A stretch of 64,000 nucleotides of DNA from the sequence record NC_026927.1, one strand, 5' to 3'. Every line of letters starts with the position of its first letter. Position 1 is the stretch's first letter. This document shows positions 10,132 through 59,792 of this stretch, one piece after another. The notes under the pieces are model-generated. The model searched no databases, was not told the origin of the DNA, and saw nothing but the letters and a program-made list of their open reading frames with translations. Made by a program: the position numbers and the translations under genes.

Positions 10132-10162
10132 AGATATGTAAAGTTCTTATTACAACACTTCC

Positions 10163-10270
10163 ATCTAACCGAGACCTATGGGGAAGTAAAATACGTCTCT
10201 AATACCTACACCGGAGGGTGGTGTAGGAATAATACTATCGTCAGCTCCCCCTGGCACTACTTACCCTTTT
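10163..10270 (+). ncRNA. PhotoRC-II-like structured 5' leader of psbA
   Basis: Stems GAGAC(10171-75)/GTCTC(10195-99) and CCTACACC(10205-12)/GGTGTAGG(10220-27). The loop GGAGGGT is complementary to ACCCT(10263-67). Position directly 5' of a cyanophage psbA matches the known motif; the family assignment is from recall. Confidence 0.65.
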
Positions 10271-57853: not shown

Positions 57854-58459
57854 ATGACAGAAGCGACAGAAACCAAGAAACCGCGTAGCGCACGAAAGGC
57901 ACGCAAACCAGCGGCACCCAAAGTCCCTACCTCCCTACCAAACAATCCTTTGATGTTTGAGATTCTTGACATGGCATCCCGTACTAGGGGTACTGAAAAG
58001 AAGGTAGATGTTCTCAAGAGATACGGGTGTGGTGCTCTAAAGGCACTATTCATCTGGAACTTTGATGAAACTGTAGAGTCTGCTCTACCACCAGGTGAGG
58101 TTCCCTACTCTGGATATGAAGAACAGCATGTATACAGTGGAACACTAACTGATAAGATTGAAGAGTCTTCACGTCAGATGTATGAGAATGGAAGTTTCTC
58201 ATTGGGTTCTACTGATGCCAACGCTAAGACTACACTAAGGGCACAATGGAAGAACCTCTATCACTTTGTTGAGGGTGGTAATGGTGGTCTATCTAAAACA
58301 CGTCGTGAGATGATGTTTATCAACCTCCTAGAATCTGTTCATCCCCTGGAAGCAGAGATCCTCATCCTAGTCAAGGATAAGGAACTTGACACCAAGTATA
58401 AGGTTCCCTTTGAGGTTGTAGAAGAAGCATTCCCCGAGATCCAATGGGGAGGACGTTGA
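57854..58459 (+). CDS. Conserved T4-like cyanophage hypothetical protein
   Basis: LFIWNFD...LPPGEVPY and RREMMFINLLESVHP.EAEIL. Confidence 0.75.
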   Translation: MTEATETKKPRSARKARKPAAPKVPTSLPNNPLMFEILDMASRTRGTEKKVDVLKRYGCGALKALFIWNFDETVESALPPGEVPYSGYEEQHVYSGTLTDKIEESSRQMYENGSFSLGSTDANAKTTLRAQWKNLYHFVEGGNGGLSKTRREMMFINLLESVHPLEAEILILVKDKELDTKYKVPFEVVEEAFPEIQWGGR

Positions 58460-58485
58460 CATAAATACAAAGGATATGTTATAAT
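58456..58485 (+). promoter_or_regulatory. Nested early and late promoters
   Basis: TTGACA-N18-TATAAT with TG extension, and CATAAATA (58460-67) inside the spacer. Confidence 0.85.
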
Positions 58486-58492
58486 ATCCACA

Positions 58493-58578
58493 CGTTCAAC
58501 CCACTTCGGTGGGTCGCAAGTAAGTCGCGGAACGGATTCGTTCATCCAGGAAACTGGACGCAAACGACTGAAGGAACG
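58493..58578 (+). ncRNA. Tandem glutamine-riboswitch-like element (Downstream-peptide/glnA class)
   Basis: Two CGTTCA...CGCA...GGAACG units with P1 CGTTC/GAACG and P2 hairpins closed by TTCG and GAAA tetraloops, upstream of a DUF4278-like ORF. Confidence 0.75.
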
Positions 58579-58612
58579 GGTTTTAACTAACCTCAACTTC
58601 AGGAGTACTACT

Positions 58613-58780
58613 ATGAACACTCTCGCACTCATCAAAAAGCAGATCAACAAAGCTGCCGCACTTCACAACGCTCAGATTTCTCACACCGCCTATCGTGGTG
58701 TTGAGTATGATGTTAGTTGTGATCAGTCTTCCGAGACACATGGCACTTTCTGCTACCGCGGACGCACTTATAACAAGTGA
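58613..58780 (+). CDS. DUF4278-family peptide (55 aa)
   Basis: Translated by hand: two YRG motifs (AYRGVEY, CYRGRTY). AGGAG RBS. Confidence 0.85.
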   Translation: MNTLALIKKQINKAAALHNAQISHTAYRGVEYDVSCDQSSETHGTFCYRGRTYNK

Positions 58781-58801
58781 GTCCTAACTGAATAGTGTAG
58801 G

Positions 58802-58842
58802 AAAGGGAAGGACTTGTTTCTTCCCTTTTTTTGTGCTATAAT
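58802..58842 (+). terminator. Terminator followed by an extended -10 box
   Basis: AAAGGGAAG/CTTCCCTTT plus T-run, then TG-C-TATAAT (58834-42). Confidence 0.8.
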
Positions 58843-58863: not shown

Positions 58864-59043
58864 ATGGACACAGACAAAGTAAAGTTTCTCATTCAATCCA
58901 TAGAGGTTCTCATTGATGAACTAAAATCAGAAGTATATGCTGAGGGTGAAACTTTTAAAGTAAGTGAAACCCAGTACTCAGAGGAATCAGAAATTCCAAC
59001 GACTATAACAAACTTTTATCCTGAAGTGACGGACGATCTATGA
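58864..59043 (+). CDS. Small hypothetical protein (MDTDKVKFLIQSIEVLIDELKSEVY)
   Basis: ATG 58864; stop overlaps the thyX start. Confidence 0.65.
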   Translation: MDTDKVKFLIQSIEVLIDELKSEVYAEGETFKVSETQYSEESEIPTTITNFYPEVTDDL

Positions 59044-59792
59044 AACCAGTCAAGGCAGATACACTCCTCAAACTAGATCCTCACCAGAAGGTTGAGATGA
59101 TCCGTTGTACTCCCAACCCACAGCAACTTGTGTTTATGGGTGGTAAGAATGACTATAGTGAGTTACCTATTGAAGACACAGACATTCCTCAAGAGAAGGA
59201 GTGTGGTGAGTGGGTTATTGAGCAACTCTTAGCGAACGAGAGAGGACACTGGGGACCCCTAGAACACCCCTCTATCACCTTCTCCTGTAGTGGGTTCGTT
59301 CATAATGTTATCGTTCAGGCAAGAACCCATAGAGTAGGTATTAGTTTTGATGTACAATCACAACGATATACCTGCAAGAGAATCATAAAAGTAGCAGAGG
59401 GGAAACTATCACCCCAGTCAGTATTCTATGTGAGACCTCCTGGTTTCTATACTAATAGGAAGGGGAAGAAGTACGAATGGATAGACGCAGACTATCAAAC
59501 TCAGTTAGGTCTCTGTCAGGCTGCAGCTGAACGATTTGCTCGTCAGTTTGAGAATGGTGTATCTGAAGAACACGCTCGTGATTATCTACCACAGAACATT
59601 CGTCAGAACTTTGTAGTCACCTTTAGTCTTCGTTCTCTGTTACACTTCCTAGACCTTCGAGCTAAACTAGATGCTCAGTTGGAAATCCAAGCTCTATGTG
59701 AGGCTATGATTGAACCTACTAAGACCTGGATTCCTGAAATCTTTGAATACTACTCAGAGAAAAGACTACACAGGGCAAGACTTGCCCCCTAA
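59040..59792 (+). CDS. thyX: FAD-dependent thymidylate synthase
   Basis: GHWGPLEH, RTHRVGISFDVQSQRY, EHARDYLP, HFLDLRA. Confidence 0.95.
   Translation: MKPVKADTLLKLDPHQKVEMIRCTPNPQQLVFMGGKNDYSELPIEDTDIPQEKECGEWVIEQLLANERGHWGPLEHPSITFSCSGFVHNVIVQARTHRVGISFDVQSQRYTCKRIIKVAEGKLSPQSVFYVRPPGFYTNRKGKKYEWIDADYQTQLGLCQAAAERFARQFENGVSEEHARDYLPQNIRQNFVVTFSLRSLLHFLDLRAKLDAQLEIQALCEAMIEPTKTWIPEIFEYYSEKRLHRARLAP

Follow-up and report, generated by a model that had tools for sequence, protein, structure and literature searches.

Two types of glutamine riboswitch have been described. Both have been shown experimentally to be translational ON switches ahead of DUF4278 genes, and the cargo of either type is usually DUF4278, which forms the N-terminal part of glutamine synthetase inactivating factor IF17. 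The type I (glnA) RNA (Rfam RF01739; structures 5DDO and 5DDP) is a three-way junction with a CGUUC/GAACG P1, a P2 hairpin, the E-loop sequences AAGUA and GAAG and a P3 that is a short local hairpin. The glutamine-II RNA (RF01704; 6QN3), associated with YRG peptides, has the order CGUUCA-hairpin-CGCA ... GGAACGG, and a 3' hairpin encloses its GGAACG. Structures solved for both types show the ligand touching C1, G40, C39 and G18 and stacking by the long-range C19:G41 pair (PMC6698751 numbering). Two molecules in the 6QN3 crystal swap pseudoknot strands, and the resulting dimer is presumed to be a product of crystallisation, absent in vivo (PMC7357161). Tandem glutamine riboswitches have been catalogued as 157 doublets and 4 triplets (PMC9481103), and the same source treats tandems as adjacent, independent and "pseudo-cooperative," each unit with a separate expression platform. 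glnA RNAs have already been noted in cyanophage genomes, and a survey published in 2017 counted just two glutamine aptamers across phage genomes and judged riboswitches to be rare in phages.

The locus described here lies in a 64,000-nt stretch of NC_026927.1 (the window), of which we examined positions 58440-58840; coordinates below refer to the plus strand. The DNA is 100% identical over the query to that of Synechococcus phage ACG-2014f, a T4-like cyanomyovirus. An earlier note on this DNA had listed an early and a late promoter, two tandem glutamine-riboswitch-like units with complementary loops, a 55-aa reading frame with two YRG motifs and a terminator, and all of these features were found where it had placed them. 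A consensus scan matches a sigma-70-type promoter (TTGACA-18 nt-TATAAT) at 12/12 positions in 58456..58485, with a TG dinucleotide upstream of the -10 box and a palindrome around that box (GGATAT at 58472-77, ATATCC at 58484-89). The late-promoter-like CATAAATA lies inside the same promoter at 58460-67. The peptide gene, an open reading frame with both YRG motifs, runs from an ATG at 58613 to 58780 and is followed by an intrinsic-terminator-like hairpin and a U-run (58799..58835, hairpin to 58831), to which folding assigns -15.6 kcal/mol. The terminator at 58799-58831 was missed by the consensus scan; its hairpin and U-run were recovered by folding. Marine metatranscriptome contigs contain the region. 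One of them begins, immediately after adapter sequence, at 58492, 7 nt downstream of the -10 box, which weakly suggests a start site there; another stops at 58831, within the terminator U-run. Such contigs cannot prove transcript ends, and they agree with a short monocistronic RNA starting at the aptamer.

The RNA ahead of the peptide gene is no chance match to the glutamine families. A covariance-model search against both Rfam types, as the earlier note had proposed, gives different outcomes for the two. Glutamine type I (RF01739) gives one match that takes in both units, 58491-58582, at 41.1 bits against a gathering threshold of 35 (E = 1.6e-5 over the 64-kb window), which bears out the idea of a glutamine-riboswitch-like RNA ahead of a YRG or DUF4278-like peptide. 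The alignment runs from the first CGUUC to the last GAACG, takes AGU/ACU as P3 and places a 41-nt insert within P3. The near-identical complete phage genome NC_026927 contains a single copy by the same match, and conservation of the region extends to 397 deposited cyanophage records. Glutamine-II (RF01704) does not reach its threshold: unit 2 alone scores 32.1 bits against 33, its 3' hairpin pairs are flagged as noncanonical, and the 3' hairpin enclosing GGAACG is not formed.

Both units, at 58493-534 and 58539-578, carry CGUUC, a P2 hairpin, CGCA and GAACG in the same order, as had been claimed. The P1 helices are a different matter, since the earlier note gave each unit its own. We refer to the four P1 strands in order as a (CGUUC, 58493..58497), b (GAACG, 58530-34), c (CGUUC, 58539-43) and d (GAACG, 58574-78). 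Relatives were collected through the peptide sequence and three degenerate DNA patterns in which the informative positions were left free, and 229 distinct cyanophage elements were parsed. The patterns imposed no tie between the positions of the four strands, which makes the test of P1 pairing a fair one. The junction-proximal nucleotides of a, b, c and d read C, G, C and G in 120 unique sequences, which are uninformative, and the first CGUUC was not located within 80 nt in 37 of the 229. The remaining combinations are C, C, G, G (59 unique sequences), U, C, G, A (8), C, A, U, G (4) and U, G, C, A (1). In all 72 of these variants with four located strands, the first CGUUC pairs with the last GAACG (a:d) and the middle GAACG with the middle CGUUC (b:c), every pair being Watson-Crick, whereas the side-by-side pairings a:b and c:d give a mismatch or wobble in every one. 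Adding three variants without a located first CGUUC brings the set to 75, with b:c as C:G in 62 and as A:U in 4, a:d as U:A in 9 (8 of these 9 doubly changed) and no exceptions.

Double changes of at least four different kinds are represented. When the states are placed on a tree of the downstream gene, a minimum of 30 changes is needed for b:c and of 3 for a:d, counts that are inflated by recombination and weak resolution. With about 10 nt between them, the first nucleotide of b and the last of c are co-inherited, so that b:c may have changed independently on few occasions. The linker between b and c is at least 3 nt long in all relatives, which fits the requirement of a hairpin loop. One relative (L139) has a C after strand b and CGGA instead of CGCA in its inner junction, so that the long-range pair flips from C:G to G:C in the inner core only. 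At the level of sequence comparison, then, covariation shows the helices and their nested topology, and the P1 strands are swapped between the units in every informative variant among the 229 relatives.

The two units also share a helix. Neither has a P3 of its own, as the earlier note had observed, and the AGUCG of the first (58523..58527) is complementary to the CGACU of the second (58565-69). Absence of covariation in this inter-unit helix had been set beforehand as grounds for rejection; across relatives the helix covaries, in several P3 families. The pairs seen in different subfamilies are AGUCG/CGACU, AGUCA/UGACU, GGAAGG/CCUUCC, GAGCAUA/UAUGCUC, GGACGG/CCGCCC and GGACGACG/CGCCGCCC. In an 8-bp form, AGCCGACU/AGCCGACU, the end pair switches from U-A to A-U, and the 5-bp form corresponds to the 8-bp form minus 3 nt on each strand at one end. 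Position 3 of P3 is frequently an A.C or C.A mismatch in other subfamilies. In an alignment of 28 compact forms (A1), the nested structure is 97.1% paired with 8 pairs changed on both sides, values reached by 0/500 shuffles; sliding the 3' partners by 1-3 columns lowers pairing to 28-58%. Both-side changes occur in 2/3 scored pairs of the outer P2.

Because nested P1 pairing holds in all informative variants, we read the element as a single type I aptamer with a second, circularly permuted core capping its P3. The 5' UTR (~58492-58612) would thus be a single compact RNA of two mutually wired glutamine-aptamer cores. The outer core forms a type I three-way junction from P1 (58493-97/58574-78), P2 (58499-514) and P3 (58523-27/58565-69). 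Strand a is followed by a single A, the P2 hairpin ACCCAC-UUCG-GUGGGU (58499..58514, from the Rfam alignment, folding and covariation) and the J2/3 joiner CGCAAGUA (58515..58522), which is invariant in A1 and whose AAGUA is one E-loop half; the CGACU of P3 is followed by J3/1, GAAG (58570-73, the stretch from CGACU being 58565..58573), the other half. Strand d, which together with G58579 spans 58574..58579, is the 3' strand of the outer P1, an assignment drawn from the Rfam alignment and covariation, and GG stands directly 3' of strand d. Changes of a:d to U:A and covariation in P2 support the RF01739 three-way junction, and the type I E-loop is recognised by sequence (CGCAAGUA with GAAGUA, and GAAG).

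P3 has no loop of its own and opens into a second three-way junction, formed by P1' (58530-34/58539-43) under a GAUU loop, P2' (58545-58) and the same P3. Its strands, in place of a short local hairpin, stand 37 nt apart around this second junction, and up to ~240 nt apart in relatives. The nucleotides CG separate AGUCG from the strand b region. The inner P1' hairpin consists of a G, strand b, GAUU and strand c (58529..58543) and covaries; after a single A come the covarying P2' hairpin UCCAG-GAAA-CUGGA (58545..58558) and the conserved inner junction CGCAAA (58559..58564), the putative ligand-site strand of the inner core, which in gene-bearing relatives stays fixed even where synonymous codons could replace it. 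Around both junctions the 5' to 3' order is P1, A, P2, CGCAA..., P3, joiner and P1, which makes the inner core a circular permutation of the outer one. Viewed as two tandem units, the RNA has its CGUUC and GAACG strands swapped, with each unit giving one strand of P3.

Counterparts of the ligand-contacting nucleotides (C1, G2, G18, C19:G41, C39 and G40) are present in both cores and nearly invariant in A1 and the other relatives. G58516 and C58517 are the counterparts of glutamine-II G18 and C19, with roles assigned by analogy to PMC6698751; the putative partner of C58517 is G58579, and that of C58561 in the inner core is G58535. Since CGUUC, CGC and GGAACGG, which hold the glutamine-contacting nucleotides of the solved structures, are kept in both cores, we infer from sequence that either core takes up one L-glutamine. 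The inner core lacks an E-loop, its joiners (CGCAAA and CG) are short, and with a loop of only 3-4 nt on P1' its long-range C:G pair may be strained. Both sites abut a common P3 and serve a single expression platform, so the glutamine response may be cooperative. Taken together, we put the probability at roughly 0.7 that the element is a double glutamine aptamer with swapped strands and a common P3, working as a single translational ON switch, with glutamine occupancy of both sites as the inferred part.

The relatives of this element commonly carry genes within the RNA. The inner P2' loop holds a whole 49-66-aa open reading frame in 187/229 relatives, and the window contains the compact, gene-free form, which recurs in several subfamilies (28 unique sequences). 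The embedded frame starts with an AUG directly after c-A-UCCC, and in 176/187 its stop codon, UGA or UAA, combines the last U of P3 with the two nucleotides that open J3/1; the remaining 11 have it elsewhere. Of 177 distinct embedded proteins, 176 join one BLASTP cluster, and 4/5 of those tested match PHROG 504. Entropies of 0.80, 0.35 and 1.14 bits at the three codon positions are as for coding sequence. The last codons are fixed at synonymous sites (GAC 148 versus GAU 1; GCA in 151 of 176, which is every Ala codon there; GAC 170 versus GAU 5), which shows a constraint at the RNA level. The helix closing P2' has at least 4 bp in 186/187 gene-bearing forms, covaries and often takes in the start codon, and the linker GAG, which makes GGAG before the embedded frame, is restricted to these forms. 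In 23 of the 37 elements seemingly without strand a, that strand is found farther upstream, by ~200 nt, and is followed by a second such gene in the outer P2 loop. An HNH-endonuclease-like frame is found in a third unit in relatives, and deletion variants also occur. We know of no earlier description of genes inside the hairpin loops of a riboswitch.

Three other explanations of the locus deserve consideration. One, the model of the earlier note, keeps the two units side by side, each with its own P1 (58493-97/58530-34 and 58539-43/58574-78), joined by a kissing or pseudoknot interaction of AGUCG with CGACU. The four P1 strands are identical in complementary pairs within the window, so either pairing can be drawn there; the Glutamine-II model aligns unit 2 to its downstream GGAACG at its 32.1 bits; and unit 1 might form its local helix co-transcriptionally, before synthesis reaches the 3' strand. 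Yet every informative variant mismatches both local P1s and keeps the nested pairs, so covariation rules out the side-by-side P1 pairing, drawable though it is, and a fold forced into that arrangement reaches -31.2 kcal/mol compared with -34.5 for the nested one, with the pseudoknot uncounted. This arrangement is therefore very improbable. Still less credible, and in our view close to negligible, is the proposal that no sensor exists and that the conserved CGUUCAUCCC...GGGACGCAA blocks mark recombination points or the edges of cassettes, at which small phage genes are shuffled, and resemble a riboswitch only by descent. The PHROG 504 small genes in both the P2 and P2' loops of relatives, the HNH-endonuclease-like frame and the deletion variants speak for such shuffling, but compensatory changes in five helices point to selection on RNA structure and not on DNA homology only, and the gene-free form recurs across subfamilies.

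A closer competitor, though an unlikely one, is a single working aptamer in which the outer type I core alone senses glutamine and the inner junction is a structural cap or the relic of a gene cassette. The outer core suffices by itself for the Rfam threshold, the inner joiners are shorter than those of type I and without an E-loop, and the gene in the inner P2' loop of most relatives means that the compact form might have arisen by deletion. Against this, CGUUC, CGC and GGAACGG are near-invariant across deeply diverged subfamilies, the inner long-range pair covaries in L139, and synonymous sites of the embedded gene are fixed (148 GAC to 1 GAT; 151 of 176 GCA), none of which a simple cap would call for. 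We retain the double aptamer as the preferred reading.

How the double aptamer would act is suggested by the sequence between it and the gene. The expression platform (58597..58605) contains CUUCAG (58597-602), which overlaps the Shine-Dalgarno GGAG (58602-05). The minimum-energy fold contains P2, the b:c hairpin and P2' plus a helix of CUGAAG (58568-73), which is the end of P3 and J3/1, with CUUCAG; a further pairing in that fold, of GUUCA (58494-98) with UGAAC (58614-18), spans the start codon. Where the variable J3/1 nucleotide of relatives is A, it stands opposite U in 61/62 and opposite C in 0/62, and where it is G it stands opposite C in 53 and U in 53 (Fisher p = 8e-14, with relatives counted as independent). 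The evaluated helix energies differ little (nested state, -30.2 kcal/mol; masked state, -28.0). The full minimum-energy fold, at -45.2 kcal/mol, is considerably more stable than the forced nested fold (-34.5), a gap that ligand binding and tertiary contacts must cover for the ON state to form. The masking helix and the folded aptamer are mutually exclusive, and glutamine binding should thus free the Shine-Dalgarno sequence. Glutamine would stabilise P1, P3 and the E-loop, CUGAAG would be pulled from its helix with CUUCAG, and the released GGAG would turn on translation of the 55-aa peptide. By this folding model, the element is most likely a translational ON switch for the peptide.

The embedded genes suggest a further layer, which we offer tentatively. 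The double aptamer may bind two glutamines cooperatively via the shared P3 and thereby give a sharp, digital ON response from its one platform. In most related cyanophages, P2 and P2' would enclose whole translated genes, the start codon being paired with the triplet ahead of the stop codon, and ribosomes moving along the embedded gene would then act together with glutamine sensing to control the peptide gene downstream.

The 55-aa peptide belongs to PHROG 545 (E = 1.4e-35). Its C-terminal 30 residues score 21.7 bits against DUF4278 (PF14105), for which the Pfam cut-off is 25.3, and 27/27 members of its family match DUF4278 at E < 0.01, the best at 5e-5; these similarities weakly suggest a DUF4278-like peptide. 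A search of PDB chains with the peptide sequence returned no match. Its listed sequence relatives carry only unnamed or hypothetical annotation, and the sole named source is a cyanophage.

The distribution of the element was also surveyed outside the cyanophage records. A scan of bacterial contigs for the junction signature gave mostly chance matches, with the full architecture in 2/120 among the matches listed, and is uninformative on hosts; one full-architecture locus comes from a Prochlorococcus single-cell assembly, in a contig of 7 kb. A looser pattern applied to 401 picocyanobacterial genomes gave no evident excess, judged by eye, over a reversed-pattern control, a result that does not imply absence. 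The element was not found in the nearest related genome record examined.

The element thus borrows from both glutamine riboswitch types. It resembles type I in its CGUUC/GAACG P1, P2 hairpin, AAGUA and GAAG E-loop sequences and three-way junction, and in its place in the 5' UTR of a DUF4278-like gene with a likely translational ON logic. Unlike the short type I hairpin, its P3 leads to a second aptamer-like junction, and the element's junction reads CGCA...ACGG, a long-range pair of type II flavour, in contrast to the type I consensus CGGA...ACGC. The CGUUCA-hairpin-CGCA ... GGAACGG order and the association with a YRG peptide are those of glutamine-II, whereas the 3' hairpin enclosing GGAACG is lacking. 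The strand swap between two molecules of the 6QN3 crystal has its like here within one chain. As in the catalogued tandems, two glutamine cores occupy one 5' UTR, but the phage units are interlocked, with a common P3, a separation of 4 nt and one platform. In place of the own P1 and own platform of adjacent tandem units, the P1 strands are exchanged and a single helix masks the Shine-Dalgarno sequence. In logic, the tandem glycine riboswitch comes closest, having two coupled sites for one amino acid and one platform; its fold is unrelated, and it docks by tertiary contacts instead of by strand exchange and a shared helix. Group I introns with homing-endonuclease frames in peripheral loops likewise place reading frames, one of them HNH-endonuclease-like in the phage relatives, in the loops of structured RNA, but the phage element involves no splicing and the window has no embedded frame.

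A keyword search of the PMC9481103 review turned up no interlocked aptamers, and the interlocked wiring is, provisionally, possibly new relative to a body of literature that leaves aside Ames & Breaker 2011 and Ren et al. 2015. If our reading is correct, reciprocal exchange of P1 strands together with a shared helix would be a new way of coupling two aptamers, distinct from adjacency or domain docking, and the element would be a natural single-chain counterpart of the domain-swapped dimer of the glutamine-II crystal. A glutamine-gated, IF17-like peptide would then directly link host nitrogen status to phage gene expression.

The inner P2' hairpin loop, which in the window is compact and free of genes, encloses a gene for a 49-66-aa protein in 187 of the 229 related elements (including L020, L024, L028, L087, and L114; the example in L020 occupies positions 389-556). 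We assign these genes to family PHROG 504, the products of which share a hydrophobic N terminus, two conserved cysteines, and a C terminus that mostly reads DA(N/H)D. The stop codon is formed by nucleotides of P3, the helix common to both aptamer cores, and of the J3/1 joiner in 176 of the 187 gene-bearing elements, and synonymous sites are invariant in the final codons.

In L081, L105, L113, L125, L138, L200, and others, the outer P2 loop also contains a gene of this family, in addition to the inner one, and the first CGUUCA is found 196-240 nt upstream. The triplet immediately 5' of the stop codon of this gene pairs with its start codon, as in UCUUAUG...CAUAAGA. Locus L123, on the same contig as L004, carries a third riboswitch-like unit in the ~800-nt region upstream of the peptide gene, with its own P3 pair (GAGCAUA/UAUGCUC). 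The P2 loop of this unit holds an HNH-endonuclease-like open reading frame, an arrangement similar to homing-endonuclease insertion. Two loci are natural deletion variants of the element: L017 has lost strand c, the 3' strand of inner helix P1', and most of the embedded gene via a microhomology deletion, and L068 lacks the first CGUUCA. In the poly(A)-selected marine metatranscriptome run X3, short contigs from gene-bearing relatives span only the conserved riboswitch blocks (equivalent to window positions 58515-58547 and 58556-58584), at a depth of 57-75 compared with ~12 on the flanks.

Upstream of the element, a palindrome (GGATAT/ATATCC, 58472-58489) lies across the -10 box and is retained in relatives with other sequences, such as GGTCTATAATAGACC. 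A corresponding RNA hairpin would be possible only if transcription began farther upstream, as it might at the late-like promoter. Elsewhere in the window, we identified a PhotoRC-II RNA on the plus strand (10145-10240; 69.5 bits, gathering threshold 39). Two genes downstream of the peptide gene under riboswitch control is thyX (59040-59792), which encodes thymidylate synthase. A glutamine riboswitch is likewise located upstream of thyX in the published marine methylophage Melnitz.

One clade (L028, L072, L075, L088, and relatives) has an additional conserved AAAACGGAUCC-hairpin-GAGAAGGUU immediately 3' of strand d, after the aptamer and before the Shine-Dalgarno sequence; this clade contains all nine of the nine U:A variants of outer P1. 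In the minimum-energy fold of the window, UGAAC across the start codon of the peptide gene (58614-58618) pairs with GUUCA of strand a (58494-58498). Asparagine codon 2 of this gene is AAC in 107 relatives versus AAU in 19, compared with a ratio of ~50:50 in neighboring genes, but both codons preserve the pairing. The predicted interaction between strand a and the start codon could provide a second lock on translation.
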